From Octopus sinensis (lineage: Eukaryota): a stretch of 64,000 bases of DNA. Shown piece after piece: positions 17,271 through 50,200 of this stretch. Each line of letters opens with the position of its first letter. Position 1 is the first letter of the stretch. Made by a program: the position numbers and the translations under genes. The notes under the pieces are model-generated. The model was not told the origin of the DNA. It was given only the letters and a program-made list of their open reading frames with translations, and did no database searches. The stretch is from positions 196,602,001-196,666,000 of the forward strand of contig NC_042998.1 of assembly GCF_006345805.1 (NCBI RefSeq). Reading direction: 5' to 3'.

Positions 17271-17302
<32 letters not shown>

Positions 17303-17333
17303 TAATGTAATACAATGATGAAGAACAATTTAC

Positions 17334-20590: not shown

Positions 20591-20591
20591 T

Positions 20592-22584: not shown

Positions 22585-22597
22585 TATATATATATAT

Positions 22598-22644
<47 letters not shown>

Positions 22645-22753
22645 ATATATTGTATTTATGTGTATATATATATATATATATGTATTTATGTGTATATATA
22701 TATATATATATATAATATATGTATTTATGTGTATATATATATATATATGTATT

Positions 22754-22800
<47 letters not shown>

Positions 22801-22803
22801 ATT

Positions 22804-22842
<39 letters not shown>

Positions 22843-22936
22843 TTATGTGTATATATATATATATATATATAATATATATATGTATTTATGTGTATATATA
22901 TATATATATGTATGTGTATATATATATATGTATGTG

Positions 22937-22972
<36 letters not shown>

Positions 22973-22974
22973 TG

Positions 22975-23005
<31 letters not shown>

Positions 23006-23130
23006 TATATATATATATGTGATGATGATGATGATGATGATGATGATGTGTATATATATGTATGTGTATATATATATATATATTATATATATATATATGC
23101 ATGTGTGTATATATATATATATATATATAA
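22585..23130. repeat. Compound (TA)n/(TG)n/(GAT)n microsatellite
   Basis: Directly visible low-complexity tract; the source of several spurious long ORFs. Confidence 0.95.
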
Positions 23131-23893
23131 AATCAACATTAACATCATCATTTAACACCCACTTGTCTATGCTCACATTGGTCACACAGAATTTTCAGCC
23201 AAGTACCCACCCTTGTGTGCAAGCAGGGTAAGATTTCCCCACAGGGCAAGAGAGTGTTATATGGAACACTAAAAAGTAACATCGCTTGTATAACAGTAAT
23301 GTTCATCTGCAACTATAACATAATGTCAAGAAAATGGGTACACACAACATCATCGTTTAACAGGTTTTCCATGCTGGCATGGGTTGGATGCTTTGACAGA
23401 AGCTGGCAAGCTGGGAAACTGCGCAAGACCCCAGCCATCTGTTTTGGCATTGATTCTACAGCTAGATGTCCTTCCTAATGCTGACCACTTTACAGAGTGA
23501 CCTAGGTGCTTTATACGTGGCACCAGCACAGATCCATTTTACACACCTTTTGCTTAAAAACACATCTTCTGAGTGTTGGGTCACACAGAGGCAATGACGA
23601 ATGACTGAGACCTTTGGCATTATGTCATGCTTGAGAAGAAGACCCACCAAGCCAAGTAAAATCAAAGTAGCGGCAGATACTGGTGTCACACAAATGGCAC
23701 CCATGAAAGTGGTACATAAAAATACTCATTACATTCTTGGAATTGTAGGGGTTAGAAAGGGCATCCAGCCATAGAAAACCATGCCAAATCAGACTGGAGT
23801 CTGGTGCAGCCTTCCAGTTTGCCAGCATGGACAACGGACATTAAATGATGATGATAGAAATGAAAGACAGTTATCAATCAATATGCTTATTAC

Positions 23894-24067
23894 CTTGAGG
23901 ATGGGTCAATCCTTTGACTGTTGTATCATTTCCTGAATTGTCTTGGGAATAGTTTCCGTAAGCATCTGGCTCAGAGATGCAGTGTTTACTATGACTCATA
24001 GCTTGGCTATGATCAACTTCTTCATTTTCTAAATCTTCCTCAAAGCTTCTCAGAGCAGCTCGAAATT
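23894..24067 (-). CDS. Module U3 exon B (174 nt, phase 1-1)
   Basis: Acceptor (t)n-cag|AA, donor CAAG|gtaata. Encodes (E)FRAALRSFEEDLENEEVDHSQAMSH...NDTTVKGLTHPQ. Confidence 0.85.
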
Positions 24068-25562
24068 CTGAAAAAAAAAAAAAGTATATATATATATATA
24101 TATATTCTTTTACTCTTTTACATGTTTCAGTCATTTGACTGTGGCCATGCCGGAGCACAGCCTTTAGTCGAGCAAATCGATCCCGGGACTTATTCTATCG
24201 GTCTCTTTAGCCGAAACGCTAAGTGACGGGGACGTAAACACACCAGCATCGGTTGTCAAGCAATGCTAGGGGGACAAACACAGACACACACATATATATA
24301 TATATATACATATACATGACAGGCTTCTTTCAGTTTCCGTCTACCAAATCCACTCACAAGGCATTGGTTGGCCCGGGGCTATAGCAGAAGACACTTGCCC
24401 AAGATGCCATGCAGTGGGACTGAACCCGGAATCATGTGGCTGGTTAGCAAGCTACTTACCACACAGCCACTCCTGCGCCTATATATATATATATATAAGC
24501 ATGTAAAAGGCACCATTCGAGCATGATCGTTACCAGCATCGCCTTATTGGCACATAAAAACACCATTTGAGCATGGTCATCTTACTGGCCCTCGTATCGG
24601 CGGCACATAAAAGCATTCAGCTGTAGAAAATCTGACAGATGAAGATTGGAGCCTGGTGCATCCATCTGGTTCGCCAGTTCTCAGTCAAATTGTCCAACCC
24701 ATGCCAGCATGGAAAGCAGACGTTAAATGATGATGATGATGCTGCTGTAATATAGCCCCAGCTGGCTATACAACATGATCTGTGTCCTTATATTTTCAAA
24801 CAAGGGAATCTAGGACTACTATAAGGACACAGATCATGTCGTATAGCCAGCTGGATACAATGTCTCCTGGGGCTAAATTACAGCAACATTCGTCCTAAAC
24901 CAGGACTGACGTGTTATGTTGGCAAACAATCTTTACTCCAAAGTACTGTTGCTGAATATCTCTCGTTGTGAGATTTACAAATAGTAATTTTCTAATGATG
25001 TTGGTATGTTTATATGCATGTAACTTAGCAATTCAGTAAAAGAGACTGACAGAATAAGTACTCATCATCATCATCATCATCATCGTTTAACGTCCGCTTT
25101 CCATGCTAGCATGTATTAGACGATTTGACTGAGGACTGGTGAACCAGATGGCCACACCAGGCTCCAATCTTGATCTGGCCGAGTTTCTACAGCTTGATGC
25201 TCTTCCTAACGCCAACCACTCCGAGAGTGTAGTGGGTGCTTTTTACGTGCCACCAGCATGGGGCCAGTCAAGCAGTACTGGCTATGACCTCGCTCGAATA
25301 TTTTACACATGCCACCGGCACAGGCGCCAGTAAGGCGACGTTGGTAACGATCACGCTCGAATGGTGCCCTTTTACATGCCACTGGCACGGAGCGAGTTGG
25401 CTGCTCTGGCAACGATTACGCTCGGATGGTGCTCTACCGAGCTTAAGAAAAAAACCAGATTCAATCAATTCATTCAACTAAAAGTTCTTCAAAGCGGTTC
25501 CCAAGCATGGTTGCAGTTTAAAGATTGAAACAGCAGATAAAAGTTAATGGAGAATGATTTAC

Positions 25563-25632
25563 CTTGTACTTGATTTTCGAGAGAAGCGTCCAAAGGTATT
25601 TCAATGCTAGAACTACCTGAAAGACTAGACAT
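25563..25632 (-). CDS. Module U3 exon A (70 nt, phase 0-1), begins with ATG
   Basis: Acceptor ttgttttcttcgatacag|ATG, donor CAAG|gtaaatcattct. Encodes MSSLSGSSSIEIPLDASLENQVQ; both ends resemble U2-A, with an internal deletion. Confidence 0.75.
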
Positions 25633-31653: not shown

Positions 31654-31815
31654 TTTCCAGAAGCACCAGTCTTTCAGCTGTTCTTTCCTTCCTTGCGTTC
31701 TTTCATAAACGTTCTTTGAAAGCATCGAGTTCTTCATTATCAATCAAAGCTTGCCTATGTTTGGTTTTAGCATGTTTTAAATCTTCGACAAAGTTTTTGA
31801 GAAGATCTTCAAATT
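31654..31815 (-). CDS. Module U4 exon B (162 nt, phase 1-1) with an in-frame TGA at 31703-31705 (pseudo-exon or poison exon)
   Basis: Acceptor gctcatgtctgtccag|AA, donor GAAA|gtaata. Encodes (E)FEDLLKNFVEDLKHAKTKHRQALIDNEELDAFKERL*KNARKERTAERLVLLE; the frame continues past the stop and aligns to the other B exons. Confidence 0.7.
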
Positions 31816-32913
31816 CTGGACAGACATGAGCAAAAAAACATTTGAAGCTAATTATGATGATTAAAAGAAACATCATTAGACATTTACACGTATAATATTT
31901 CGACTGCAATGGACATAAGGTGGATGGATGGATGGATGGACAGATGTTTATATATTTATATGATACAGATCATACACAAATCACAATTTGTATCAAGTAT
32001 TTGTGTTATACCCTTATAAATTAAGGGTCAGTTTAAACGGACGATTGGCATGAATGGGTTAAGCAAGAACCAGAGGTCAATAACAAGTAAGAGAGATGGT
32101 ATGGAAAGCAGTGACTATTGGGGTCGACTAAAAATCTCAATCTCTACTCTTTCCAATGCCGCCAGGAGTGCTACAAAATTTGTGTGATGTGGAAATATTC
32201 CATCAATATTGCTCAAATGATATTGGCATCAGTTTTAAAATCCATCCAAGACTTGGCCCCATGCTATCTGCCCACTTCAAAAAGTTACAAACACCCACTT
32301 GATATATCGATAAATAAAACCACTAGAGTTGTTTTGTAACTCTTTTACCTGTTTCAGTCATTTGACTGTGACCATGCTGGAGCACCACATTTAGTCAAGC
32401 AAATCGACCCCAGGACTCATTCTTTGTAAGCCCAGTACTTATTCTATCGGTCTCTTTTGCTGAACTGCTAAGTTACAGGGACGCAAACACACCAGCATCG
32501 GTTGTCAAACAATGTTGTGGGGACAAACACAGACACACAAACATATATACACACACACATACATACATATATATATACGATGGGCTTCTTTCAGTTTCCG
32601 TCTACCAAATACACTCACAAGGCTTTGGTCAGCCCGAGGCTATAGTAGAAGACACTTGCCCAAGGTGCCACGCAGTGGGACTGAACCCGGAACCATGTGG
32701 TTGGTAAACAAGCTACTTACCACACAACCACTCCTGTGCCTAAAGTCAGAGTAAATTCATGATTATTTTAGAATTTAAGTGAAATATTGGTATTTTAGTT
32801 TGAAATATAGTAAAGATTACATTAAAACATCTTTCAACCAAATGAACTTTCTCTTTTGGTTTTATCATTACTAAGCTAAAACAACAATGGGTTTGTCGCA
32901 TCCTTAGTACTGA

Positions 32914-33397
32914 CATGCATAAGATCTGGTCATCAAATCTAAGTAGAGACTTCAAACTTGAAATCTTCAAAGCCACAGTCGAACCAATTCTACTATATGG
33001 CTCAGAAACCTGGACGTTATCAAAGAAGTTTGAGAGGCGGTTGGATGGAACCTACATTTGCCTCCTTATAAGAGCTCAAAATCTCTCGTGGAAGCGCCAT
33101 CCAACCAAAGTACAAATATATGGGAAACTACCACCTGTATCATCTCTTGTGAAAGGTAGAAGTGTCCAGTTTGCTGGACATTGTTGTAGAGCTGAAAACG
33201 AGGTAATTTCTACTCTTCTCCTCTGGAAGTCATCTACTCGCAATGCCAGAGGGCGCACACTCTCCTACCCTGATGTAATCTCCAGGGATACAGGCATCCA
33301 GCAACAGGACCTCCATAATGCTATGATGGACTGTGAGGTCTGGCGTAGCATGGTAAATTCCATTGTCTCGACCACAGTCGAACAATGATGATAATGA
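32914..33397 (+). mobile_element. 5'-truncated RTE/RTEX-type LINE with 9-bp TSD
   Basis: ORF 32915..33388 (VEPILLYGSETWTL...QFAGHC) is a typical post-RT LINE C-terminus with a (TGA)n tail. TSD tagtactga at 32905-32913 and 33398-33406. Confidence 0.85.
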
Positions 33398-33427
33398 TAG
33401 TACTGAATCAGTTAAAATATATAGGTG

Positions 33428-34036
33428 TGTAACGAACTTAGCGAGTGTGAATATCTTGTCTTGTACTTTCGGGGTACAAGAAAGCAATCACTCACTAGCC
33501 GTTGCTTTAATAATCCAGAAATCTACTAGTCAGAAACAACAAGACGCAGACATAAAATATATATATTCTACTTTATTCTCTTTCTTGGTAACAGTAACAA
33601 TAAGTGTGTTATCTGATGTCCTTGGTTCTGGGCGCACAAGGCTGAAAGTTAATCGATTGTAATATTTACAATATTCAGCCGCCAAAACCAGAACGGGTTC
33701 AAGATGGCGTCGAACAATGGAGACGATGTTGGTCTGCAACAATTTGGTTAAAGGCCTTTGGTAAGGACTGCTAGAAGCAAGTTCAAACGGAGAGAAAATA
33801 TGCGTGACCGTCGCGTTCAATCGCTGCCGTCCCAAGTCGCCGCTGCTGCTGCTAGCGGTCAAACGTTCCACGACCCCCCCTGCCTCGCTAACTATCACGT
33901 AGGCAAAAGGGTCGTGCTTCCAGTGGTTCGCGCATGCGCGAAAGGGCCCTTCCTTTCTCTGCCTTGGTAAAGGCACCAACACGCGCGAAATACAAATGGA
34001 CGGTGCGCGAGCGCGCACCGCTATAGGGTCACTACA
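33428..34036 (-). mobile_element. Solo LTR (Ty3/Gypsy-type by TSD length), 609 bp
   Basis: TG...CA termini (tgtaacgaac ... ggtcactaca) with a 4-bp TSD GGTG (33424-33427, 34037-34040). The empty site is visible in the paralogous intron at about 40943-40950. CpG-rich; AATAAA on the minus strand at 33572-33577 gives the orientation. Confidence 0.85.
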
Positions 34037-34099
34037 GGTGGCTATTAAAGAAAACGTAGACAGTATATTAATGTAACACAATGTAAAAGTATGGCTTAC

Positions 34100-34151
34100 C
34101 AAGCACATTTTCTGAAAGAATGCTTTTATGGGGTGACACAGCAGGAAACTC
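34100..34151 (-). CDS. Module U4 exon A (52 nt, phase 0-1)
   Basis: Strong acceptor ctttttctgtcttctttgcttcag|GAG, donor TTG|gtaagc. Encodes EFPAVSPHKSILSENVL; the downstream intron start is homologous to those of U5-A and U6-A. Confidence 0.72.
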
Positions 34152-36215
34152 CTGAAGCAAAGAAGACAGAAAAAGAAAAAATACATTTGAGAGGAGAAAC
34201 TGCATCTCAAAGATTGGCCTTCGTTACCCTAACAAAGCTTAGACATGACCCAAATTGTAGTACAGTTTCCACATCTGGAATGGTGCTGCAGTTACGAACA
34301 CCAAGACATCTTACACTATATCCAAAAATGACCATATGGCTGAGTGGTGTGAGGTAAATCACCAAGGACTACAGATCTACTGCATCTCTCACTGTCTTTC
34401 GCAATTATAACTACAAATTATCATCATTACCACTGCCTCCACTGACATTTCTTCATAATAATGTTTACTAATCAATTTCTACTGTTAGAATTGGTGACCC
34501 ACGACTTCAACTAAAAACTTTATCATTACAAATATTCTAATAAAAACTCTGCTGTTACAAATGTAATGTGACAGGAATTGAACCCCTGAATCACTCAACT
34601 ATTTTGTTTTGTAACTGTTGAAAACTGGAACCAATTATGAAAAGTCAAGTATCATATTGATCTTGAATGGATTAATGGCTAAGTCAACCTAAGCAGAGTG
34701 TAAAGATTAAGGTGCAAAACCAAATAATATAGAGTTACCCTTTTTGTTACTATATTTGTATGAAAATACACCAACTTTGATTTAATTACTTTAAAAGAAA
34801 ACGAAGAATTTAGAAAATAACTGTCATTGTTATTAAGCTGGTGTAAGGTGGCAAGATGGCCAAATCGTTAGCACACCAGGTAGGAGGAATTACAACTGTG
34901 TTTCATGGTCTGCTACCACAACAGCTCCTTTATAGGGTCCAGTTAGCTCAAGACATCATCAGGAGGAACCACGTCCGGTTTTGGCCCCTACTCTTCTACC
35001 ATTTTGATGTGGTGGGGCCCCTCCTTTCAGAGCTGTCTTCAGTCCTGGTGTTGGGTGCATGTCTTCTTTCTTCTGTTCCCTTAACATCATTTGGTCTGTC
35101 TTTACATTCTGAGTTCAAATTCTACCAGGGTCAACTTTGCCTTTAATCTATTTCAGGGTCAATAATATAAGTACCAGTTAGGCACTGGGGTCTGTGTAAT
35201 TGACTTAGTCCCTCTCCCATAACATTGCTGAACTTGGGCCAATATAGGAAACCATAATTAAAATGTCGTTTGGAACGTAAATTAATGTGAAACCTTGATA
35301 GAAAGTTTTAGTTACGATCTCTTTAAAACAGTGAATATATTTCATAGAACCAGGGGATCTCTCAAACAGGTTGATATCAAAAGGGTTAAGCTTCAAACCA
35401 CAGCCCACATGCCCCTACTGTTTGAGATAAATAAGTGTACTGTTTGAGATAAATAAATATTTATTTCTTTATTGCCCACAAGGGGACAAACAAAGGGATT
35501 AAGTCAATTACATCAACCCCAGTGTGTAACTGGTACTTTATTTATCTACCCCGATAAGGCGACAAGCTGGCAGAAACGTTAGCAAACCGGTCGAAATGCT
35601 TTGTGGTATTTCGTCCGCTGCTGCATTCTGAGTTCAAATTCCACCGAGGTCGACTTTACCTCTCATCCTTTTGGGGTCGATAAATTAAGCACCAGTGACG
35701 CACTGGGGTCGATGTAATCGACTTAATCTGTTTATTTGTACTTGTTTGTCTCCTCTATGTTTAGCCCCTTGTGGGCAATAAAGAAATAGGTACTTAATTT
35801 ATCAACCCCGAAAGGATGAAAAGCTAAGTTGACCTCAGCGGAATTTGAACTCCGAACGTAACGGCAGACGAAATACCTATTTCTTTACTACCCACAAGGA
35901 GTTAAACACAGAGAGAACAAACAAGGACAGACAAACAGATTAAGTTGATTACATCGACCCCAGTGCATAACTGGTACTTATTTAATCGACCCCAAAAGGA
36001 TGAAAGTCAAAGTCGACCTTGGCGGAATTTGAACTCAGAACGTAATGGCAAATGAAATACCGCTAAGCATTTTGCCCGGCGTGCTAACGTTTCTGCCAGA
36101 TCACCGCCTTAATAAATATATATTGATTGATAATTGCATCAGAGTGATTTGGTTTCTCGCTTTCTTCAAAAGAGAGCTCCAGTAAATATTTAAAGTAAAG
36201 AAGGTAGTATATTAC

Positions 36216-36253
36216 CTCTTCAGGGATAGAATAAAATGCTTCTTCTTCAGCTT
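36216..36253 (-). CDS. Module U5 exon C (38 nt, phase 1-0)
   Basis: Acceptor cttttatattacag|AA (identical to U2-C), donor GAG|gtaata. Encodes (E)AEEEAFYSIPEE. Confidence 0.75.
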
Positions 36254-37010
36254 CTGTAATATAAAAGCAAGTGAATTCCATTATAAAAAAATATCAACTT
36301 ATAACAATTCACATTCAAACATTCAAGATAAATCTTAACTTATGGAATAATGGGGAAACAAAATTGAAATAATGTTTCTGGATCCTAAGAAATGAAGCCA
36401 ACTTTGCAATCCATATAGTTGCAACATTTCAAAGAAATATATATATGCATACATTGGGATCACCAATACTTTATTATCTCCCCTTCTTTCTACCTCTCTT
36501 GTCCTACCCTTTTTTTCCCTCAAGATTTTTTATTCTCTCCCTGTTTATTTTCTCTTATTGCTTTCTATTGAAGAGCTTAAGCTCAAAACATAAAACACTT
36601 TCTCACTTTCCCAAGCGTCAAACTAACACACCTGCTTGCTGTTCATACACCTGTCTTCATCACCTTTTGTTTACCTGTAAATTCCAACTCTCTCTCTATA
36701 TATATATAAATTGAGATAGGGGTTGTGAGTGCAACCCACCATGGGATAACATGTATCCAATATGAGCATAATGAGGCACCCATGGCTGAAACAGCTGTAA
36801 GATGTAGTTTATATTTATATTTGTATTTATTTATATTCACTTATACATACTGTACTTATTGTATCGTATTACTCATTGATGTACACTGTTTTGTTCTATA
36901 TTATTATGTTTGACCTTAATGTTCATTTGTAGTGGTTTAATAAATTATGTGATTGGGTATTATCTAGTAGTTGATTATTGATTAAGGTGTATTTCTCCAT
37001 TTCCTTATTT

Positions 37011-37045
<35 letters not shown>

Positions 37046-38208
37046 CAAGGATTTGTGTCCTAGTTGCCAGATACTTGGTTGGGCCATGCTGGAGTACCAC
37101 CTTTAGTCGAATAAATTGAGCCTAGGACTTATTTTTGTAAGCATAGTACTTATTCTATTGGTCTCTTTTGCCGAATCCCTAATGTTACATAGGCGTAAAT
37201 GCACCAACATCAGTTTTCAAGCGACAGTAGGGGAGACAACTACACACACACGTACACACACACATATATATATGTATATACATACATATACGAAGGGCTT
37301 CTTTCAGTTTCTGTCCACCAAATCTACTCACAAGGCTTTGGTCAGCCAAAGACCATAATAGAAGACACTTGTCGAAGGTAACATGGCGTAAGACTGAACC
37401 CAGAAGCATGTGGTTGAGAAGCAAGCTTCTTACCACACAGCCACTCCTGTGAATGTATGTATGTAAATATGCATGTATGTATGTATGTATGTATGTATAG
37501 CAGCTAAGCCTGGTTTCACCTGGTCGGGTTGGATGATGTGGCTGTAAAACCTGCTCTGTGTAAGCATTCGACTTGTTTGGGCATGCTTACATTAAAAAAC
37601 AATTTTAGAATGACTTTTTTCTGTCAAAACAATAAAAATAACTGATCAAAATATAAAAAAACCAAGATTCAACCAAATAAAAAATAAACCCAAATACTAA
37701 GCGAACAAAGATGAACCATCCCACTTCCATTGCAAGTACACACGCACACACACAAACACAGACACACATACACATACACACATACCCCACCCTTTTACAT
37801 ACACACAGTGTTGAAACGCTGTTTGATTTATTTTTTCAGCGTACAATTTTCATCATCCCACTACCAAGTATGACATCACCCCTTCCTTCCTTATTCATCT
37901 ATCACTCCTTCCTTTCTCATTCATAAACACGAGAGTATTATTATAGTAGATTATCTCGGTAACCATGGGAGCTATGAAAAAATACAGCAACACCACCGGA
38001 TCATTCTGCACATCTGTGTAATTTTTTGCGCAATTCCACACAGTGAATCCCAAGACAAGAAAGAATCGCCCATGTCAAATTTATATGTGTATATATATAT
38101 ATATATATCATCATCATCATCATCTTCATCGTTTAGCGTCCGTTTTCCATGCTAGCATGGGTTGGACGGTTCTACTGGGGTCTGTGAAGCCAGAAGGCAT
38201 ATATATAT

Positions 38209-38240
<32 letters not shown>

Positions 38241-38248
38241 CATACATA

Positions 38249-38315
<67 letters not shown>

Positions 38316-39668
38316 TATAAATTTATGCAGATACACACACACATTGTGATACAGAGATGTGTTATCTGTTTCCCTACTCTGATTCCTTATAGTGTTATTA
38401 GTAAATTAATTTTGGTCTGTTTTATACACACACAAGTTCAATTAAAAATGCAGTAATATGCACAATTCTTCTCAACTCCAATTCTGTGATTTATTTCAGG
38501 TGAACATTAACCAATGATTCATTAAAAGATTCATTAGTCTGTTGTAGCTCTGGCTGAGGAGACACAACAATGTTGAAACACCAGGGTTCTCAAAGATCCC
38601 CGATGCTAATGAATCAAATGTGTTATGAAAGAAGAAGCAGTTCTCCAAATAATGAAATACAGCAGTGATTAGCATATTCATGTTCCTGTGATCAATGACA
38701 GGCCTGCCTGACTGGCTCCTGTACCGGTGGCACATAAAAAGCACCCACCACACTCTTGGAGTGGTTGGCGTTAGGAAGGGCATCTAGCTGTAAAAACTCT
38801 GCCAGATCAAGATTGGAGCCTGGTGCAGCTACTGGCTCTCCAGACCTCAGTCAAACCGTCCAACCCATGCTAGCATGGAAAGCAGACGTTAAATGATGAT
38901 GATGATGTGTTTCCCGAAATGTTAAATGTAAATATAATTATTGTCAAGCATAATCATTGACAACGTCACCTTGCTGGCACATGTGCCAGTGACATGTGTA
39001 AAACAACATTCGAGAGTGGTCGTTGCCAGTGCCGCTGGACTGGCTCCCATGCAGGTGGCACGTAAAAAACACCTTTTGACCGTGGTCGTTGCCAGTAGAA
39101 TGTAAAAAGCACCCACTACACTCTCAGAGTGGTTGGCATTAGGAAGGGCATCCAGCTGTAGAAACTTTGCCAGATCAGATTGGGGCCTTGTGCAGCCTCC
39201 TGGCTTCTCAGTCCTCAATCAAACTGTCCAACCCATGCCAGCATGGAAAGCGGATGTTAAATGATGATGATGATGATGAATTTACTGATTCTTGCAGTTC
39301 CCATGCACAGGATGAATTTTTAAGAAGTAACCGAAAAAAAAACCCATCTTTTGTTGCATTTTGTCCCTAATTAAGCAATTTTCAGATTAATTTGTTGTGA
39401 GAGGGGGTTTCCTTTTCATGTTTTATGTTACACTGCCCCTCCCCAAAGAAGCCATTTACAATAAATGCCATTACCGTGTGGTACATATACAACTGTTTGA
39501 TCCATCACATCTGAACGCTCTTCGAAATCAGACAGGCTTTCTTCATAATCTTTATCTCCTAAAAACAACTCTTCTTTCAATTCTGGAAGCACATCAACAA
39601 AAGAAATGTTTAGATATAAAGTTTAAAAGAAATCATTGTTAGATATTTAACACATTTTACAATAATGG

Positions 39669-39744
<76 letters not shown>

Positions 39745-39984
39745 TGGTTCTTTATTTTATTGACCCCGAAAAGATGAAAGGCAAATGTGACCTTGGCAGG
39801 ATTTGAACTCAGAAGGTAAAGACGGATGAAATGCCTCTGAGCATTTTGTCCGGCGTATCAACAATTATGGTAGTTCACCGCCTTGCATCAGCCAAATTAT
39901 GTCAACTCCAATATCCCTACACATTTGTTGGGGGTTTGTTGGAGAAACAGAAAGCTGATGAAGGACAGTGCTTTTAATTTACCT

Positions 39985-40378
39985 ATAGGCATAGGAGTGG
40001 CTGTGTGGTAAGTAGCTTGCTTACCAACCACATGGTTCCAGGTTCAGTCCCACTGCATGGCACCTTGGGCAAGTGTCTTCTGCTATAGCCTCGGGCTGAC
40101 CAAAGCCTTGTGAGTGGATTTGGTAGACGGAAACTGAAAGAAGCCCGTCATATACATATATGTATGTGTGTGTGTAAGTTTGTGTTTGTGTGTTTGTACC
40201 CCCAACATTGCTTGACAACCGATGCTGGTGTGTTTACGTCCCCATCACTTAGCAGTTCGGCAAAAGAGACCGATAGAACAAGTACTAGGCTTACAAAGAA
40301 TAAGTCCTGGGGTCGATTTACTCAACTAAAGGCGATGCTCCAGCATGACCACAGTCAAATGACTGAAACAAGTAAAAG
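39985..40378 (+). mobile_element. tRNA-derived bipartite SINE (CORE-like accttgggcaagt, central TA/TG microsatellite), representative copy
   Basis: A box tggctgtgtggt, B box ggttcagtcc, tail gcatggccacagtcaaatgactgaaacaagtaaaa. Other copies at 24108-24480, 32345-32735, 37075-37450, 52030-52300, 55105-55460 (minus) and 60920-61265 (plus). Confidence 0.85.
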
Positions 40379-40465
40379 GGTATGCCAATAGTTCTATGTA
40401 TAAACTAGCTATAAAAATGTTGCAAGCCAAACAAAAGGGAGGCAGTTATCACTACAAGGTATTAC

Positions 40466-40624
40466 CTGGTATATATCGTGTCCTATCCATTAGGCCCACT
40501 GTGGAAACGTCCCCTTCAGCTGCTAGATAAGACGAGTACCATTTACTTTGATTCACATTCCTCTTAAGTTCAGCTTCTTCTAATTCTAACTCTTCCTCAA
40601 AGCTTTTTATAGCATTTAGAAACT
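40466..40624 (-). CDS. Module U5 exon B (159 nt, phase 1-1)
   Basis: Acceptor gatgtcttttcag|AG, donor ATACCAG|gtaata. Encodes (E)FLNAIKSFEEELELEEAELKRNVNQSKWYSSYLAAEGDVSTVGLMDRTRYIP. Confidence 0.82.
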
Positions 40625-40964
40625 CTGAAAAGACATCAAAGAAACATTAATTTAGATATGAGGCCACATTTGTCTATCTGAGACCTTGTTCCTTGTACAT
40701 GTGTAGAACAGGGCTCTGCAACCGGTATGCCATAGCATGTATTCCACAGCACACTGGTGTGCCATGAGATGATGCTAGGTGTGCTGCAGTGTAACCTGAA
40801 TATAATTTTCTTCCTTGTACTTTTAGTTGTAATTTTAAAACATCTTTCAACCAAATGAACTTTCTCTTTTGTTTTTATCATTACTAAGCTAAAACAACAA
40901 TGGGTTTGTCCCATCCTTAGTACTGAATCAGTTAAAATATATAAGTGGTTATCAAAGTAAACGT

Positions 40965-41544
40965 TACTACTATGGTACTCCGTCGGTTACGACGATGAGG
41001 GTTCCAGATGATCCGATCAATGGAACAACCTGCTTGTGACATGTGTACCCTTAATGGAGTTCTCGGGGAGATTCAGCATGACACAGAGTGTGACAAGACT
41101 GGCCCCTTTGAAATACAGGTACAACAGAAACAAGAAGAAAGAGTGAGAGTAAGCTGTGGTGAAAGAGTACAGCAGGGTTCACCCCACCCCTGTCAGAGCC
41201 TTGTTGTTGTTGTTGTTGTTGTTGTTAAGCAACAAGATAGGTAAGGGTGATTAGGTGATGGTCTAGGGCTTAGGGGTAGGAGACGCCAGACCTTGGGAAA
41301 AAAAATACTTTGGTCATCTTGTAGTCGAGAGCTCTTCGTTGACGCCTGACACCACTGGGAGGTGAACCTCAAAGTCACTGGAAATGGAGATCTTCAGGTC
41401 CAAATTCTTGAACGGCGCCAGAGCCTCATGGAGTTTTAGGTGTTTTTGCTCAATAAACACTCACAATGCTCAGTCTGGGAATTGAAACCGCGATCCTATG
41501 ACTGTGAATTTGCTGCTCTAACCACTGAGCCATTGCACCTCCAC
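40965..41544 (-). mobile_element. tRNA-headed SINE with a nested LINE-tail fragment
   Basis: Minus-strand head gtggaggtgcaatggctcagtggttagagc, short (tac)n tail. TSD aaagtaaa(c/t)gt at 40954-40964 and 41545-41555. Confidence 0.7.
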
Positions 41545-41597
41545 AAAGTAAATGTAGACGGTATATTAATGTAACATAAAGTAAATTTATGGTTTAC

Positions 41598-41775
41598 CTT
41601 GTATTTCAAGTTGAGTAGAAATGCTCAATCGGTTATCAGGAGCTGGCAAGTCTATAGTATGAAGCTGTTGAGAAAGTTCCAAAGAAGGTTCCGAAGGAGG
41701 CGCTCGGGAAGTTCTCACAGGATGTGCTCGAGAAGTTCTCACAGGTGGAGGTCTGAGACAACATAATAAACGATA
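41598..41775 (-). CDS. Module U5 exon A (178 nt, phase 0-1)
   Basis: Acceptor ttttccttcgtttatttcag|TAT, donor ATACAAG|gtaaacc. Encodes YRLLCCLRPPPVRTSRAHPVRTSRAPP...NRLSISTQLEIQ. Confidence 0.72.
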
Positions 41776-43388
41776 CTGAAATAAACGAAGGAAAAGCAAT
41801 GTGGTGATATTCTCACAAAGTATTAGTGTAATTAGGAAAATGGGTTCAAAAGCCTCCGGTTCATAAATTTAAAATACTTCATAGTTGTTTAATCAGAAAC
41901 TTGGCTGCTTGGTCAAAATCTCAGGGTCACTACTTCTAGTTAGTTAAAGAATGTTCAAAGAGATTACAACATTTAGTCATATACAGAAAGGGTCAAAGGT
42001 CACAGAGGGATCCCAGAATTCAATAACTCCTTTTTCTTTGAAATGTGTGCAGTCGGTGACTGGGCAGTACGGCAAATGAGCTAGTGCGTGTGTACGCGTG
42101 AGGACGTATACACGAGTGCAGGTGCGCGTATCAAAATTCACTGTAAAAATGAGCTCAGGTGATCGAACGAGTATATTCTCAATCCATGATATCGAAGATC
42201 TTCTTGTAGGGTTGCAGTGTATGAAATGCCTTGAAGGTTTTTCAGAAGTGAAATGTGTCTGGCGCTGTTGTCGTGGGTAATTGCTGGGGTTAGCAAGAAC
42301 GAAAGTGTAGCATGCTGGGGGGGGGGGGGGATGCGCGAGACAGGTAATTTTTCTCCCTTCAATACGTGACCAAACAGGGGTCTAACAGAGGGAAATTATG
42401 TCTAAGCATGAGCGCAGAGCATGTGAACATCCGACATGCATCGAGTCTGGAAAAGAGCTGAGCTGAGCTTGCACAAACAAGGCAGTAGAGGCATGATAGA
42501 GTTGCGTGTGTGTGTGTGTGCAAAAGGGCTCATGGCTGAGGTAGTATGCTAATGTAGTGATTACAAATACAGTGTTGAATATGCCAATGCTTAAGGCAGT
42601 GCTGGATATTTCAGCCAGTGCATCAGGTATTAAACACCTTGAAATGTGCAGGAGCAAGAATGAGGCATGTGGCGCATTGTAGAGGAAGAACAACTTTCTC
42701 TATGCATACGCGACTGACCTAGGGTCTTACAGAGGGAGGATGGAAAACAAGCAAGAAAGGCAGGGTATGGTGCATGAATGAGATAGTGTTAACATGTATC
42801 ATCATCATCATCATTTAACGTTTGCTTTCCCTGCTAGCATGGGTTGGATGGTTTGACTGTGGGCTGGCAAACCAGATGGCTGCACCAGGCTTCAATCTTG
42901 ATCTGGCAGAGTTTCTACAGCTGGATGCCCTTCCTAACGTCAACCACTCCGAGAGTGTAGTGGATGCTTTTTACGTGCCACTCAGGTGGTACTGGCAACG
43001 ACTTTGCTCTTTTTTTTTTTTTTTTTTTTTTACACATGCCAACGGCACAGGTGCCAGTAAGGCGATGCTGGTAATGATCCTGCTCGAATGGTGCCTCCTA
43101 CATGCCACCGGCGCAGAAGCCAGTTAGCCGCTCTGGCAACGATCATGCTCGGATGGTGCTCTTAGCACCATGTTTCCAAAATGAACGAAAAAAAGTATAT
43201 GCAAAATGCAACGTGCGACAATGTGATTGAAAGAAAGTGGAAGTGCATTCTGTCTGAATGGAGGCATGAACCAATGGCTAAGTCCACCTAAACAGATTGG
43301 CATTTGAGTCAGAGTGGATTGTTATCTTCTTCAAAAGAAAGCCCTAGTAAATGGTTTCAGCAGATAAGTTATTTAAGAGAATACTTAC

Positions 43389-43432
43389 TCCCTTTGGAAT
43401 ACGGGGTAACATTGCCGCAATATCTTCAGGAT
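43389..43432 (-). CDS. Module U6 exon C (44 nt, phase 1-0)
   Basis: Acceptor ccccttttacattgcag|AT, donor GGA|gtaagtattct. Encodes (D)PEDIAAMLPRIPKG; downstream intron (43305-43350) resembles that of U5-C (36140-36190). Confidence 0.75.
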
Positions 43433-43962
43433 CTGCAATGTAAAAGGGGAGAATTCCATTCATCATCATCATCATCATCATCATTTAGCGTCCGTTGTCC
43501 ATGCTGGCATGGGTTGGATGGTTTGACCAGGGCTGGCACGCTGGAAGGCTGCACCAGACTCCAGTCTGATTTGGCATGGCTTCTGTGGCTGGATGCCCTT
43601 CCTAATACCAACCACTCTGAGAGCATAATGGGTACTTTTACGTGCCAGTGGCACAGGTGCCATTTGTGTGACACCGGTATCTGCCATGACTTTGATTTCA
43701 CTTAGCTTGAGGGGGTCTTCTTCTCAAGCATGACGTAATGCCAAAGGTCTCGGTCATTAACCCTGTGAGACCCACTGGCTTTGCTGTATCCCTCAGTGTA
43801 CATGTATCTTCCGGCTTCTATCTTTCTCACTAAACACATACTCAATGACCACTAAGCCAATGAATGTATTTTTCTGGCAAACTACCAGGTGTGTACTGTA
43901 TGGTTTATTAACTACTACATTATTTACATTAGACATATATGTATCCTCAACTTGTTTGTTGT

Positions 43963-44010
43963 GACCACAATGTTTCGGCTGATTTACTCTCCAGCCTTCA
44001 TCAGGTGTCC
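43963..44010 (-). ncRNA. Decayed minimal hammerhead-ribozyme motif of a Penelope-like element
   Basis: Minus strand: GGACAC-CUGAUGA-aGGCUG(n10)CAGCC-GAAAC-AUU-GUG. The core boxes and stem II are intact; the ACGU palindrome reads ACAU. Confidence 0.55.
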
Positions 44011-44133
44011 TGGAAGAATTTTGAACCCAACCTCTATAACTTTCCATGAGCTTATAGTGTAATGGTTAAGAGCATGGGCTACTGACCCCAAGATACCGAC
44101 TTCAATTCCAAGCAGCGCCTTGAATAAATAATA

Positions 44134-44165
<32 letters not shown>

Positions 44166-46044
44166 AAAAATAATAATAATAAATAGAATAGGAAGCCAGA
44201 CATAGTTTTAATTGAGAAAGAAAACAAACTATGCTGGATCTTAGATATTTTAAAATTTACAGGAGGGGGGGTAACTTGAGGTGAGAAATTGATTGGGAGA
44301 CGTTTTGGGGCGCTACAGTGGTTGCTTTGCTGTGAAAATGGGGATTTTATTGATTTGGGGGGACACTTTGGGGTCTAGATTGGACACCTTTTGCCCGATT
44401 TCAATCAAATTTTCAACATGGTAAAGTGGAAACGGATTTGTAATTTAAGCGCGGGAAAATGGGTTCGAAATTTTGAAAATTAAGGCAAGATTTATGAAGT
44501 TGAAAAAAATTTCTCATTTTTATGTATTTTTGCCTTTTATTTTTTATTGTTTAAAGTTTTCATTTTTTCTTAAAGAAATTTACAGCTGCATGTAGCCCGT
44601 GTTTAGAGCTTTCATTTGCATGGTCAATCGTCGAACAATTCCCAAAATAATTACTAAATTTAACAAAGAAATCCACTTTCTTCTTATTTTTAATCGCTCA
44701 AATAGTGGCACGTACAAAAGGCAAATGTGCTTTCCGTTGTCACTGCCTGATAATTATGATTGATCTTTCAAAATATTTTCTTTCTCAACTTACTCAAGAT
44801 CTTTTGTTTTTTATAAATGGGAGAGAGATAGATAGAGAAAGACAGAGAGTAAGAGAAAGCGAGGGAGAGTCTGAGAGAAAGGAAGAGTAAGAGAGTGGGA
44901 AAGTGAGAGAGAAAAGAGAGAAAAACAAAGAGGGAGAATGTGGCGATAAGAAACAGAAAGGAAGCAACAGAAAGTAACAACCACACCCTCACCCGTGCGT
45001 AGAGCGGGTCACCTTAAGCTAGTAAGTTAATAGAAAGATAGAGCTGTCAGGGCTTCCCTCTAATTCTTTAGTGATAAATGTGATATGTTGTAAACCAAAT
45101 GACAGAGAGGCACTTAGCACTACACAATATTACCTAGCGCTGGAGGTGATCTCAAAATTGATTTTCTCTTCACTATATCCATCGAGGGTTTCAGGCGAGG
45201 TTCACGGCGGAGCACTGGTAAAATATAAATAAAATATACTTTTTAGATATAACCAGGTTGTTGTTTGCTGCTACACTGCAGGTAAAAATATTTGTTAAAC
45301 ATGCACATACATCTGCATAAATGATTAAAGTGAAGGTCATTTTTTTAAAGTCTGTATTCAAACGAGGTCTTTGCCAGTGCCGCTGGACTGGCCCCTGAGC
45401 AGGTGGCACGTAAAAAGCACCATTTGGGCGTGGCCATTGCCAGTACCACCAAACTGGCCCTCGTGCCGGTGGCACGTAAAAGCACCCACTACACTCTCGG
45501 AGTGGTTGGCGTTTGGAAGGGCATCGAGCTGTAGAAACTCTGCCAGATCAGATTGGAGCCTGATGCAGCCTCATGGCTTCCCAGACACCAGTCGAACTGT
45601 CCAACCCATGCTAGCATGGAAAACGGACGTTAAACGATGATGATGATGATGTCTTGTCTATATGTTGAAAGTCTCTCAAACACACACACACAAACAATCT
45701 CACTAAAATAACTAAATATATATTATATATTCATATAAAACGAAAAAATAAATATGCCCTTTAAAAGCCTAGCCAGGCTCATGGGCCCGGTTTCCCAGTT
45801 TCAATGGCGTATGTGTTCCCCAGCTGGATGGGACACCAGTCCATCGCAGCGTTACTCATTTTTGCCAGCTGAGTGGACTGGAGCAACATGAAAGGAGGTG
45901 TTTTGCTCAAGAACACAATGCATCATCCGGTCCAGGAATCGAAACCACAATCTTACGATCATGGTGCTGACACCCTAACCACTAAGCCACACGCCTCCAC
46001 ATATATTCATATAGTCACCCGTATTGAAAATCAGGGAATGACTC

Positions 46045-47118
46045 ACGAAGTGGTCATACCCAGTAACTGGTGTAGCAGCACCATAATCAACTGCTACAAA
46101 GGTAAAGGTGACGCCTTAGATAGAAATAATTACAGAGGTATCAAATTGTTGAATCAGGAGATGAAAGTTACAGAGAGGGTCACAGCCCAACTAATTAGGG
46201 ATAGGGTTACTCTAGATGAGCTGCAGTTTGGTTTTGTGTCAGGGAGAAGCACCACTGATGCTATATTTTTGGTAAGGTGTAGGAGAAATATACAGCCTAA
46301 GACAAACCTTTGTACTGGGCTTTTGTTGACTTGGAGAAAGCATTTGACAGGGTCCCTTGATCCCTTATCTGGTGATCAATGCAGAAACTAGGGATAAATG
46401 AATGGTTGGTAAGAGCTGTAGAACCCATGTATAGGGACACTACCAGTAAGGTGAGAGTTGGCAGCAAGTATGGCAAAGAATTCAGGGTACAAGTAGGGGT
46501 TCACCAAGGATCGGTCCTCAGCCTCCTTTTGTTCATCATAGTCCTCCAGGCAAAAACAGAGGAATTCAAGACAGGCTGCCCCTAGGAGTTTCTCTATGCT
46601 GACGATCTTGTTTTTATAGCTGAATCACTACCAGAACTAGAGAAGAAGTTCCAGGTACGGAAACAAGGTCTAGAATTAAATGGCCTAAGAGTTAACCAAA
46701 AACCAAAGTCTTAGTTAGTAGGAAGGCAGACAAATCACAAATCCCTTCAGTTAGATGGCCCTGCTTAATCTATAGAAAAGGCATAGGTAGAAACTCCATA
46801 AGATGCACCTGGTACATCCTATAAGCTATGAACATATAAGAGGTGTAGCAATATCAGGGCAAGGTTAAGAGGGACAATAACTTTTGTATGTGGAAGGTGC
46901 ACAGGTACAATAAACAGTGAAAATGTAGAGAAAACAGATGCCATCATCTGTCAGGTGAGTAAACTAGAGGTAGTAGACAGCTTCTGTTATCTGGGTGACC
47001 AAGTAAGTAGAGGAGGTGGATGCTCCAAGAGCATAGCTGCGAGAATAAGATTAGGCTGGGCAAAGTTCAAAGAGCTCCTACCTCTGCTGGTAACAAAGGA
47101 CCTTTCCTCAGAGGGAAG
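46045..47118 (+). mobile_element. Decayed RTE LINE reverse transcriptase region
   Basis: NYRGIKLL, FGFVSGRSTTDAIF, VGVHQGSVLS, LYADDL and VDSFCYLGD motifs with frameshifts. Confidence 0.88.
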
Positions 47119-47227
47119 GGCATATTGTATGATGCCTTTGTCAGGGGTTTTCTCTAATTCTCTAGTGATAAATGTGATATGTTGTAAACCAAATAAAAGA
47201 GAGGCTCTTAGCAATACATAACATTAC

Positions 47228-47281
47228 CTGGTATACTGCCCAAAGGTCTCGTTAAATCGAATTCTGCATCATCATCATCAT
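47228..47281 (-). CDS. Module U6 exon B, shortened (54 nt, phase 1-1)
   Basis: Acceptor ttatatattccag|AT, donor ATACCAG|gtaat (same end as U5-B). Encodes (D)DDDDAEFDLTRPLGSIP. Confidence 0.65.
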
Positions 47282-47971
47282 CTGGAATATATAAACAATA
47301 CATACCTTATAGATATGATTATAACGACATTTTAAAGCATTTATACTGAAACAGACATGGTGTCCTCCAAAAATGTATGCACACTTTAGAGGAATGCCAA
47401 TGAGAAATGTTCCAGAAGACTATGGATGTTGATGAGCTCCACAAAGGCACAGGAGTAGAGCAGGAGTGGCTGTGTGGTAAGTAGCTTGCTTACCAACCAC
47501 ATGGTTCGAGGTTCAGTCCCACTGCATGGCATCTTGGGCAAGTGTCTTCTACTATAGCCTCGGGCTGACCAAAGCCTTGTGAGTGGATTTGATAGATGGA
47601 AACTGAAAGAAGCCCGTCGAATATATGCATCATCATCATCGTTTAGCGTCTGCTTTCCATGCTAGCATGGGTTGGACGGTTCGACCGGGGTCTGGAAAGC
47701 CAGGAGGCTGCACCAGGCCCAGTCTGATCTGGCAATGTTTCTACGGCTGGATGCCCTTCCTAACGCCAACCACTCCATGAGTGTAGTGAGTGCTTTTTAC
47801 GTGTCACCGGCACAGGTGCCAGACGAGGCTGGCAAATGGCCATGATCGGATGGTGCTTTTTACGTGCCACCAGTATGGAGGCCAGGCGAGGCTGGCAACG
47901 GCCACGATCGGATGCTGCTTTTTACGTGCCACTGGCATGGAGGCAGTCGGGGTGGCGCTAGGAAGTCGGGG

Positions 47972-48011
<40 letters not shown>

Positions 48012-48410
48012 ATGTCTATGTTTGTCCCCCCAACATAGCTTGATAACCGATGCTGGTGTGTTTGCGTCCCCATAACTTAGCGGTAGAATAAGTACTAGGC
48101 TTACAAAGAATAAGTCCTGGGGTCAATTTGTTCGACTAAAGGCGGTGCTCCAGCATGGCCGCAGTCAAATGACTGAAACAAGTAAAAGAGAGGAAGAGAA
48201 GTCAAGAAAGGATACTAAGAATGTATTGAGAAACTAGTCACGAGACAGGAATTTAGAAATCAAGCATTCATCGCATTTTATAAAGTTGTCGTTAGAAAAG
48301 TTGCATTTCAAGAAATGATTATTGCTTTTAATAAAAACGATCTGAGGAATTTTTCACTGGTCTGGATTTGGTTACAGTTGCAGGCAGGCTTGTAAGACAG
48401 GTATGATCAA

Positions 48411-48646
48411 GGCGGCAAGCTGGCAGAAACGTTAGCACGCCGGGCGAAATGCTTAGCGGTATTTCGTCTGCCGTTAGGTTGTGAGTTCAGATTTCGCCGA
48501 GGTCGACTTTACCTTTCATCCTTTCGGGGTCGATTAAATAAGTACCAGTTACGCACTGGGGTCGATGTAATCCGTCGACTTAATACCTATGTCTGTCCTT
48601 GTTTGTCCCCTCTATGTTTAGCCCCTTGTGGGTAATAAAGAAATAG
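48411..48646 (+). mobile_element. tRNA-derived SINE with a Meta-domain-like centre, representative copy
   Basis: Head ggcggcaagctggcagaaacgttagc, centre gtcgactttacctttcatcctttcggggtcgat, tail aaagaaat; TSD ggtatgatc. Other copies at 3490-3690, 16856-17087, 27605-27751, 35470-36110, 53600-54005, 56555-56790, 58240-58560. The Meta assignment is from memory. Confidence 0.85.
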
Positions 48647-50130
48647 GTATGATCCTTGTAAAACAGGTTTGATCCATTATGATCCTTCAGTGGGTGATTC
48701 TCTGCAGGTTTTTGCTTTAACATCAATTACTTTGACACTCAAATCAGAGATCAATTGAGAAGTTTCCAGAAATTCCCAGTGCAAGGCCTGATTTAGTTCA
48801 GATAGTAGGGTAAGACAGAGATCAGCAGCTGAAAGGATCAATTATGTAGTTGAATCATTTCTCAGCATTCCAGAGTCCAGAATTTTAATGCATATGTTTT
48901 TGGCTTGCCATTGTCAGGGAGTTAGAGGTGCATTAAATAAAAACCTGATGTTTATTGCAATCAACCCATTGTATCAAAGCAAAAAAGAAAAAAATGAGTT
49001 ATTGGCTTTCATACAAAAGATGGCTGATGTGATCATCAAGGCATCACTCAGTCTTAGAAAAGAGACCTGTTTTTATGGTATATTTCATCCACACATGAAG
49101 CCGTGACAATTTTGTTCCATCTAACCAGCCCACCTATGTGTACCTTTCCTTCATTGGACACTAAACTCTGCTTGCGAAGACCTGTTGAGGCAAAGAGGAA
49201 TTCCCATGGGAAACCTGTCTTAAATTTCTCTGTTATTGTCTGGAAGACTGTTACCAAAACCCTTATAAACTCTCACCAGCATACTAAATTAATAGCTGTA
49301 CTTATTGTTAACTAGCATCTGTGCTAGTGGAGTGCTAAGAACACCATCCAAGTGTGATCATTGCCAGAGCAGCTGACTGGCTTCCATGCCGGTGGCACGT
49401 AAAAATCACCATTCAAGCATGATTATTACCAGTGTCACCTTACTGGTACTTGTGCTGGTGGCACGAGAAAAAACGTTCGAGCGAGGTTGTTGCCAGTGCC
49501 GCTAACTGGCTCCTGTGCAGGTGGCCGTTGCCAGTACCACCTGACTGGCCCTCGTGTTGGTGGCATGTAAAAGCACCCATTACACTCTCGGAGTCGTTGG
49601 CATTAGGAAGGGCATCCTGCTGTAGAAACTCTGCCAGATCAGGATTGGAGCCTGGTGCAGCCATCTGATTCGCCAGTCCTCAGTCAAATCATCCAACTCA
49701 TGCTAGCATGGAAAGCGGATGTTAAATGATGGTGATGATGATGATAACCATCCATATAATTGAAACAAAGGAGAACCAATGTCTTAGTATAAAATATGTG
49801 TGCATGTGTCCATGTGTGTTTGTATGTGAGTGTGTGTGCATGCATATGTGTGTGAGTGTGTGCATGTGTGTGTGAGTGTGTGCGTGTGTGCATGAGTGTG
49901 TGTGTGTGTGTGTGCGTGTGTGCACATGTGTGTGTGAGTGTGTGCATGTGTTCATGTATATAGATGTATATGTACAAAAGTGTGTAATTGTTTGTGTGAT
50001 CATTATGGAATCAAAAGAACGATGGGTTTATCCTATCGTTAGTCAATGAATGAAATAAAATAGAAAGATGTCTACCAAAGTAAATGTAGACAGTACAATA
50101 ATGAAAATATAATGGAAAAGAATGGTTTAC

Positions 50131-50200
50131 CTTCTATCTTAACTGTGGGAGTAGCACCATGCAAATCGTCGTCTTCGAAATCAGCATAATCATAAGGGGA
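50131..50200 (-). CDS. Module U6 exon A (70 nt, phase 0-1)
   Basis: Acceptor tttttctgcttcctttgctccag|TCC, donor ATAGAAG|gtaaaccattct (as in U1-A). Encodes SPYDYADFEDDDLHGATPTVKIE. Confidence 0.75.

Follow-up and report, generated by a model that had tools for sequence, protein, structure and literature searches.

In host genes of non-coding RNAs, which encode a small nucleolar RNA (snoRNA) or a microRNA (miRNA) in an intron, the introns are better conserved than the exons. Toxin gene families show conserved introns next to rapidly changing exons as well. For the three-finger toxins of snakes the process was named 'accelerated segment switch in exons' (PMC2474615, PMC2711939), and accelerated exons with conserved introns were reported for the peptide genes of Conus (PMC3862624). 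Short-tract interlocus gene conversion is another process by which mosaic similarity arises (reviewed in PMC3924837), and islands of divergence and similarity have been described (PMC3728101). Here we analyzed a window of 64,000 nucleotides (nt) from Octopus sinensis, the window being the whole stretch of DNA under study. It holds an array of repeated exons of three types (A, B and C) on the minus strand, whose units, U1 to U6, are spread over two adjacent genes, an upstream orphan gene (U6, U5 and U4) and a Cep57L1-like gene (U3, U2 and U1). A block within the intron between exons A and B (the A-B intron) is nearly identical in U4 and U5, and the exons beside it are not. The best reading of this block is that it is probably a short tract of ectopic gene conversion between the U4 and U5 introns, older than the split from O. 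vulgaris.

The locus resembles short-tract interlocus gene conversion between tandem paralogues or internal repeats in several respects. A patch of about 100 nt is nearly identical amid much older divergence, the site patterns of patch and flank are incongruent, and the copies are arranged in tandem at a distance of 7.5 kb, with the same orientation. It differs in that the tract is wholly intronic and very short, with one edge at the insertion site of a long terminal repeat (LTR), and in that a single event before the species split is visible and ongoing concerted evolution is unsupported. With the toxin gene families it shares unalignable exon segments beside a recognisably conserved intron, and exon length changes that keep the reading frame. 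In contrast to these families, the ratio of non-synonymous to synonymous divergence (dN/dS) between orthologues is about 0.35-0.5, one island is conserved rather than the introns on both sides, and the proteins are repeat-rich and of low complexity, one being the product of an orphan gene without Pfam match and the other that of a neighbour with Cep57 domains. Nothing tested here points to secreted toxins. The traits that define the toxin pattern, a dN/dS above 1 in unsaturated comparisons and conservation of the intron on either side of the divergent exon, were looked for and neither was observed, and the resemblance to toxin genes is superficial. With the RNA host genes the locus shares an intronic stretch of about 110 nt that is better conserved than the flanking exons, but here there is no Rfam family and no folding signal, and the exons keep an open, weakly constrained frame.

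One near-identical island in the A-B introns of U4 and U5

The window was compared with itself by BLASTN, which returned more than 2000 local matches, mostly from families with 20 or more copies that resemble short interspersed nuclear elements (SINEs). Matches between the A-B introns of U4 and U5 were found for 32822-32913 versus 40835-40926 (97.8% over 92 nt, E 1e-38), for 33398-33427 versus 40918-40947 (96.7%) and for 34047-34100 versus 41545-41598 (85% over 54 nt). They are separated by three insertions, each bounded by a clean target-site duplication (TSD). The U4 block is split by a fragment on the plus strand (32914-33397) that resembles a 5'-truncated non-LTR element, with a 9-bp TSD (TAGTACTGA) at 32905-32913 and 33398-33406. 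It has an open frame of 157 amino acids (aa) and a TGA-repeat tail. Judged from its structure it would be a long interspersed nuclear element (LINE), and its open frame gave only a weak match to DUF6451 in Pfam. A solo LTR with TG...CA ends occupies 33428-34036 in the same intron and is flanked by the 4-bp TSD GGTG at 33424-33427 and 34037-34040. The U5 intron carries a SINE-like insert on the minus strand at 40962-41544, with an 8-bp TSD (AAAGTAAA) at 40954-40961 and 41545-41552. No intact tRNA was found in the SINE-containing region by ARAGORN.

Once these three insertions are stripped, a gap-free alignment of the U4 and U5 introns starts at the donor and runs over about 172 nt. The mismatches are unevenly spread over this alignment. 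The donor-proximal segment (minus strand, 34041-34099 in U4 and 41553-41597 in U5) differs at 11 of 63 positions, and the identity of its U4 copy is about 83% with U5 and about 77% with U6. The block differs at only 2 of 109 positions. In U5 it is uninterrupted (40835-40943, minus strand), and in U4 it consists of a proximal part of 17 nt (33407-33423) and a distal part of 92 nt (32822-32913), both on the minus strand, with the two mismatches in the distal part. The homology stops abruptly at 32822 and 40835, and the remaining 200-1000 nt of each intron are unalignable. The conserved feature is one island and not the introns as wholes.

The surrounding sequence is much more diverged. The alignment of exons A4 and A5 (52 and 178 nt) does not exceed that of shuffled sequence (z=-0.6), and over their first 44 nt B4 and B5 have 16 differences, by which 9 of 15 residues are altered. 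Apart from the donor-proximal stretch and the block, U4 and U5 are at most 64% identical or cannot be aligned. Among all unit pairs, the exons with their 60-nt flanks are typically 55-68% identical. Only the flank that directly follows exon A stands out clearly, at 77-83% (z about 9) in U4, U5 and U6. For A4 versus A5, the 60 nt upstream are 60% identical (z=0.8) and the 60 nt downstream 83% (z=9.6), and the intron upstream of exon A is not conserved among U4, U5 and U6. Exon B5 is nearer to B3 (63%, z=7.8) than to B4 (58%, z=2.0), and therefore U4 and U5 are not recent whole-unit duplicates.

Most of this pattern had been read from the letters in an earlier note on the same DNA. It had claimed a continuous U4/U5 alignment of about 170 nt once three TSD-bounded insertions are removed, had given the bounds of these insertions, and had described a near-identical block next to a less similar donor-proximal part, B exons with about 16 of 44 nt changed, mostly altering amino acids, and unalignable A exons. 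All of these descriptions agree with the alignments above. Its broader claim that the introns are conserved more than the exons holds for the one island and fails for the rest of the introns.

A third copy in U6 and the switch at the block boundary

A sensitive search and a profile search of the window revealed a third copy in the U6 intron (49975-50130, minus strand). It contains the donor-proximal segment and about the first 90 nt of the block, after which comes a CA-rich microsatellite, and is 69-78% identical to U4 and U5. The copy is collinear with the U6 donor. Compared with U4 and U5, it has 14-15 differences over 63 donor-proximal positions and 28-29 over 91 positions of the block. Orthologous sequence was compared from the O. 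vulgaris locus and from the O. bimaculoides Cep57L1 locus with 10 kb upstream of it. No block copies beyond U4, U5 and U6 were found in the window and none beyond the orthologous sites in the O. vulgaris locus, and the block was not found in the O. bimaculoides Cep57L1 locus. Because U6 carries the block at the equivalent place, the block is ancestral intron sequence that was also present in U6.

The difference in mismatches between block and donor-proximal segment (2/109 versus 11/63) is significant (Fisher p=3e-4), and the maximum chi-square breakpoint falls at column 63 (permutation p=0.016). The informative sites change in the same way. The donor-proximal segment is star-like, with 9 sites grouping U4 with U5, 6 grouping U4 with U6 and 5 grouping U5 with U6, and the corresponding numbers in the block are 28, 0 and 1 (Fisher p=5e-5 for the contrast between both segments). 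Thus divergence and site pattern switch sharply at the block boundary. A short tract of ectopic conversion is expected to leave such a footprint, a change of relationship over some 170 nt of non-coding sequence.

The homogenising event predates the split from O. vulgaris

At the DNA level, the identity between the window and the O. vulgaris locus is 91-97%, and the divergence is very uneven, the identity of the high-scoring segment pairs ranging from 84% to 97% across window positions 21.5-63.4 kb. Identical runs between the window and O. vulgaris reach 546 nt, and 15 runs are at least 154 nt long, when 0.15 would be expected at a uniform rate. Several of the long runs fall within transposable elements.

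The LINE, LTR and SINE insertions are all present at the same sites in O. vulgaris, and both differences between the U4 and U5 blocks are common to the window and O. vulgaris. The U5 block has no differences in 127 nt from its O. vulgaris orthologue, and together with the donor-proximal segment none in 180 nt. The U4 block has 4 differences in 92 nt (4.3%), which is at or above the local divergence of 2.6%. Split by the LINE and evolving at or above the neutral rate, the U4 copy is probably under no present constraint. The four U4 changes are private to O. vulgaris and clustered within ~27 nt. Conversion of U4 by U5 in the window lineage after the split was also considered as their source and was excluded, because a shared U4-specific base sits between the four private changes. 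Since both U4-U5 differences are common to both species and a post-split conversion is excluded, the homogenisation is older than the divergence from O. vulgaris. Paralogues within a species were not found to be closer than orthologues between species. Because the event predates the only species split available, this classic signature of concerted evolution is not demonstrable here.

Ectopic gene conversion as the favoured explanation

We infer gene conversion as the mechanism, and the order of LTR insertion, conversion and LINE insertion likewise. In this model, the locus is an old array of C-A-B exon triplets on the minus strand, shared by the upstream orphan gene and the Cep57L1-like gene. 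The repeats are ancient, with exons and most intron sequence diverged to saturation, and the first ~170 nt of the A-to-B intron is ancestral sequence common to U4, U5 and U6. Shortly before the O. vulgaris split, ectopic conversion or an equivalent templated repair patch probably copied about 110 nt between U4 and U5. The copied stretch would thereby have been reset to near identity, and the LINE fragment would have inserted into the U4 copy afterwards; the LINE is placed after the homogenisation because a tract across the LINE site would have erased or copied the LINE. Among U4, U5 and U6, the donor-proximal identity of 77-83% may go back to an earlier round of homogenisation or to slower decay. 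If the LTR was already present, the tract may have been bounded by LTR heterology at one edge and by the limit of homology at the opposite edge.

Several points weigh against conversion. The tract is short (~110 nt), and the sequences it joined were probably about 20% diverged, which makes a poor conversion substrate. Only one event is seen, it predates the sole available species split, and no second independent conversion was observed. The absence of differences over 180 nt between the U5 island and O. vulgaris could hint at constraint, though such runs are common here. Finally, the change-point in divergence (17% to 2%) coincides to the base with the solo-LTR site (33424-33427 and 34037-34040), a coincidence that is left unexplained unless LTR heterology delimited the tract. 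It could be due to chance (roughly 2%) or to the LTR acting as tract boundary.

Selection on the exons

Selection was estimated from paralogues and from orthologues. Between paralogues, dN and dS are saturated (B4 versus B5: dN 0.97, dS 0.61 over 47 codons, ratio 1.6), and pairs overall range from 0.3 to 1.6. For the A, B and C exons the paralogue dN/dS is either saturated or based on too few codons and is thus uninformative. For the upstream gene, the window and O. vulgaris were compared over 298 codons, which gave 13.5 synonymous and 17.5 non-synonymous differences and a dN/dS of 0.33-0.41 (about 0.36). The non-synonymous changes are below the neutral expectation (p=0.009). The Cep57L1-like repeats were compared between the window and O. 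bimaculoides over 339 codons, which gave a dN/dS of 0.39-0.54 with unchanged exon lengths. Exon divergence between species is 0-5.7%, no higher than the intron divergence. The products of both genes evolve fast and are weakly constrained by purifying selection. Positive selection on the exons is not supported, and no signal of it appeared in the tests that were run.

Alternative explanations

The earlier note had proposed a genomic tandem duplication followed by accelerated, positive selection on the exons, as is typical of reproductive or conflict genes. Under this proposal the modest divergence of the intron reflects the real age of the duplication, and the exons were driven beyond neutral divergence by positive selection or by segment replacement of the venom type. 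The A exons of U4, U5 and U6 are indeed unalignable beside an intron of 77-98% identity, their lengths shift over the array in frame-preserving steps (52, 70, 70, 157, 166 and 178 nt), the B4-B5 ratio of 1.6 exceeds 1 on saturated values, and the snake and Conus toxin genes mentioned above offer comparable patterns (PMC2474615, PMC2711939, PMC3862624). In contrast, the orthologue dN/dS of 0.36, with its deficit of non-synonymous changes, and of 0.4-0.5 in the neighbour, together with an exon divergence between species that does not exceed that of introns, speaks against acceleration. Between U4 and U5, conservation extends neither to the intron upstream of exon A nor to the acceptor side of the A-B intron, the jump from 17% to 2% inside the intron is beyond the reach of selection on exons, and B5 is closer to B3 than to B4. 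We therefore regard accelerated exons as improbable. The tandem duplication itself stands in outline, with the correction that the units are internal exon-triplet repeats and that U4 and U5 belong to one gene. The intronic gene conversion that the earlier note had listed as an alternative is now favoured by the evidence, and the block is not an independently inserted multicopy repeat, which it had named as one of the findings that would overturn its reading, being donor-collinear in U4, U5 and U6 and lacking further copies in the loci compared.

A functional intronic element kept by purifying selection, such as a regulator of splicing or polyadenylation, an enhancer or the coding tail of an intron-retaining isoform, would also give a conserved island, and we consider it unlikely. 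It would account for the 0/180 differences of the U5 block and donor-proximal segment from O. vulgaris at a local intron divergence of about 5%, for the first ~40 nt past the A donor being recognisably similar in U1, U2, U4, U5 and U6, and for the similar short tails obtained by read-through of the A donor, in which one annotated O. vulgaris isoform ends. But the U4 copy is split by the LINE, separated from its donor by the LTR and changed at 4 of 92 positions in O. vulgaris, and the U6 copy has decayed to ~70% identity, with half of it replaced by the microsatellite. Constraint alone does not predict a star-like site pattern adjoining the block, either. Long identical runs are common at this locus, transposable elements included, and because these runs are over-dispersed, the lack of differences in U5 is not evidence of constraint. 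A structured RNA hosted by the intron (snoRNA or miRNA) was rejected on Rfam and folding tests: Rfam gave no match in the whole window at gathering thresholds and none in 40600-41000 at E up to 10, and the minimum free energy of the block is not unusual on the two strands (z-scores 0.15 and -0.01). Constraint on the U5 copy is the weaker reading compared with conversion. In one form of this reading, the ~170-nt island just past the A donor would be a module for splicing or polyadenylation regulation or for the short hydrophobic tail of an intron-retaining isoform, kept by selection in the upstream orphan gene while the exons turn over by whole-segment replacement. This form is doubtful; if true, it would be a non-toxin case of conserved intron and switched exons in a young cephalopod gene derived from Cep57L1 repeats. 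It is very improbable that the block is a low-copy repeat fragment that landed independently in the U4 and U5 introns, even though the window is packed with SINEs and other repeats, the U1 and U4 introns share another patch (104 nt, 91%) at non-equivalent positions with a TTAA start like a small transposon, and the distal homology of the block ends abruptly at TTAA. The block is collinear at equal donor distance in U4, U5 and U6 and has no TSDs of its own. Independent insertion is unlikely because only these three equivalent copies are present in the 64 kb window and in the O. vulgaris locus and none at the O. bimaculoides Cep57L1 locus. Least probable of all is that the block took fewer substitutions by chance or through local variation in mutation rate. 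With 13 mismatches in 172 sites the sample is small, and the identical runs between species are strongly over-dispersed, but the block is ~30% diverged from U6 and so not intrinsically slow, and the permutation and site-pattern tests (p=0.016 and p=5e-5) argue against chance.

Ectopic conversion thus being the preferred reading, the feature is real but ordinary, and the Cep57L1-like triplet repeats, with an orphan gene formed from extra copies, are a modest side result. The case calls for caution, as an intron that seems more conserved than its exons between paralogues can stem from a single conversion patch in an old array. To read such introns as a sign of positive selection, dN/dS from orthologues and a third copy as outgroup are needed.

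Repeat architecture and the two genes

In the first mapping, 16 exons were located on the minus strand, all with AG/GT splice sites. The A exons are 70, 178, 52, 70, 157 and 166 nt long (length mod 3 = 1), the B exons 159, 162, 174, 174 and 177 nt (mod 3 = 0) and the C exons 44, 38, 47, 53 and 50 nt (mod 3 = 2). From these strict length classes follow cyclic intron phases: phase 1 from B to C, phase 0 from C to A and phase 1 from A to B. When spliced, the mapped exons stay open, with a frame of 274 aa over seven of them.

A profile built from five B-exon peptides was searched against 1.8 billion cluster representatives and matched three clusters, namely a cep57l1-like protein of O. bimaculoides (isoforms of 545-651 aa), a hypothetical protein of O. 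vulgaris (284 and 311 aa) and a protein of Argonauta hians (544 aa). The Pfam domains Cep57_CLD and Cep57_MT_bd are present above curated cut-offs in the O. bimaculoides and A. hians proteins. No Pfam match, and thus no Cep57 domain, was found in the O. vulgaris hypothetical protein, which is the orthologue of the upstream gene. The spliced A+B peptide of U2 gave no match in a word-indexed protein search, and a literature search on octopus Cep57L1 found no papers. Collinearity with the orthologous proteins shows two adjacent genes on the minus strand. The units are repeated exon triplets, C-A-B, over both genes, and U4 and U5 are internal repeats within one gene rather than paralogues in genes of their own.

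The in-window part of the upstream orphan gene spans 31654-50200 (minus strand) and holds U6, U5 and U4. Its exons follow in the order A6 (50131-50200, 70 nt), D6 (47281-47228), E6 (45214-45134), C5 (43432-43389), A5 (41598-41775, 178 nt), B5 (40466-40624, 159 nt), B' (39582-39475), C4 (36253-36216), A4 (34100-34151, 52 nt, intron phase 0 before and phase 1 after) and B4 (31654-31815), all on the minus strand. B4 holds the stop of the gene (TGA, 31705-31703), which is kept in O. vulgaris, and the part of the exon past the stop is a relic that preserves the frame and has a relic donor. The gene is orthologous to O. vulgaris CAI9716917, and its first coding exon lies outside the window. The gene is annotated in O. 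vulgaris only, as a hypothetical protein, and no annotation was found in other species. Neither its exons nor the block were detected in the 10 kb upstream of Cep57L1 in O. bimaculoides, a region with assembly gaps. About 15% of positions 1-10300 of that locus matches the window, and gaps are located at 5360-5479, 9228-9463 and 10305-11060. The upstream gene may be absent, displaced or unassembled in O. bimaculoides.

The N-terminal repeat region of the Cep57L1-like gene spans 9773-25632 (minus strand) and holds U3, U2 and U1. Its exons are A3 (25632-25563), B3 (24067-23894), C3 (19522-19476), A2 (17490-17334), B2 (16683-16510), C2 (14935-14883), A1 (12278-12113) and B1 (10932-10756), and the next mapped exon is at 9822-9773. 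The exons A3 to B1 are collinear with the O. bimaculoides Cep57L1-like protein, and the Cep57 domains are read from the orthologue proteins. The O. bimaculoides protein has an extra exon (DIIASVARIKS...) between B1 and 9822-9773, which is unmapped in the window and skipped by the 274-aa frame. In the Cep57/Cep57L1 family, both domains (PF14073 Cep57_CLD and PF06657 Cep57_MT_bd) occur in the orthologues of the downstream gene, O. bimaculoides XP_014778168-71 and the A. hians protein. The N-terminal repeats (A3 to B1, 339 aligned codons) differ at 85 nt from the O. bimaculoides coding sequence. The A-B-C repeat region lies mostly outside the Pfam-matched domains; its last repeat (B1) alone extends into the beginning of the Cep57_CLD match. 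The upstream gene (U4-U6) shares only the N-terminal repeat modules with its neighbour and no Cep57 domain. The repeat module of the Cep57L1-like N-terminus, a triplet of exons with cyclic phases, was copied upstream into a separate, weakly constrained open reading frame.

Additional observations

In exon A5 a 12-nt in-frame indel (SRAP) distinguishes the window from O. vulgaris. Its site is a proline/arginine-rich, internally repeated stretch (PVRTSRAHPVRTSRAPP).

Read-through of the A donors on the minus strand gives the tails GKPYFYIVLH in U4 (34099-34067), GKLFFIIVLH in U2 (17333-17301) and GKPFSIFVLL in U1 (12112-12080), each followed by a stop. The O. vulgaris isoform CAI9716918 ends exactly as such a short hydrophobic tail. 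These tails may represent intron-retaining or alternative 3'-end isoforms.

The second patch shared by A-B introns lies at 11981-12084 in U1 and 31961-32062 in U4 (minus strand, 104 nt at 91%). The distances from the splice sites are not equivalent, and both copies start right after TTAA with CCCATTCATGC, which resembles the end of a small piggyBac-type element. The U4 copy in the window is 96% identical to the U1 copy of O. bimaculoides (locus positions 23438-23539).

The B3-C3 intron contains a fragment of a B-type exon (20507-20578 versus 23859-23931), comprising the 3' end, the donor and ~35 nt of intron. The fragment shares 87.7% identity with B3 and occurs in O. bimaculoides as well; a partial duplication probably left it behind as a pseudo-exon.

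A SINE-like family of about 400 bp occurs near several B exons (32339-32745, 39983-40381, 24112-24481 and others), with copies inside the A-B intron of U4 and immediately downstream of B5 and upstream of B3. These copies are 80-89% identical with mixed orientations, and they are independent insertions outside the repeat unit. At the end of the window, a direct repeat of 307 nt (62447-62753 and 63695-64000) with 99% identity and a spacing of ~1.25 kb looks like a recent local duplication.

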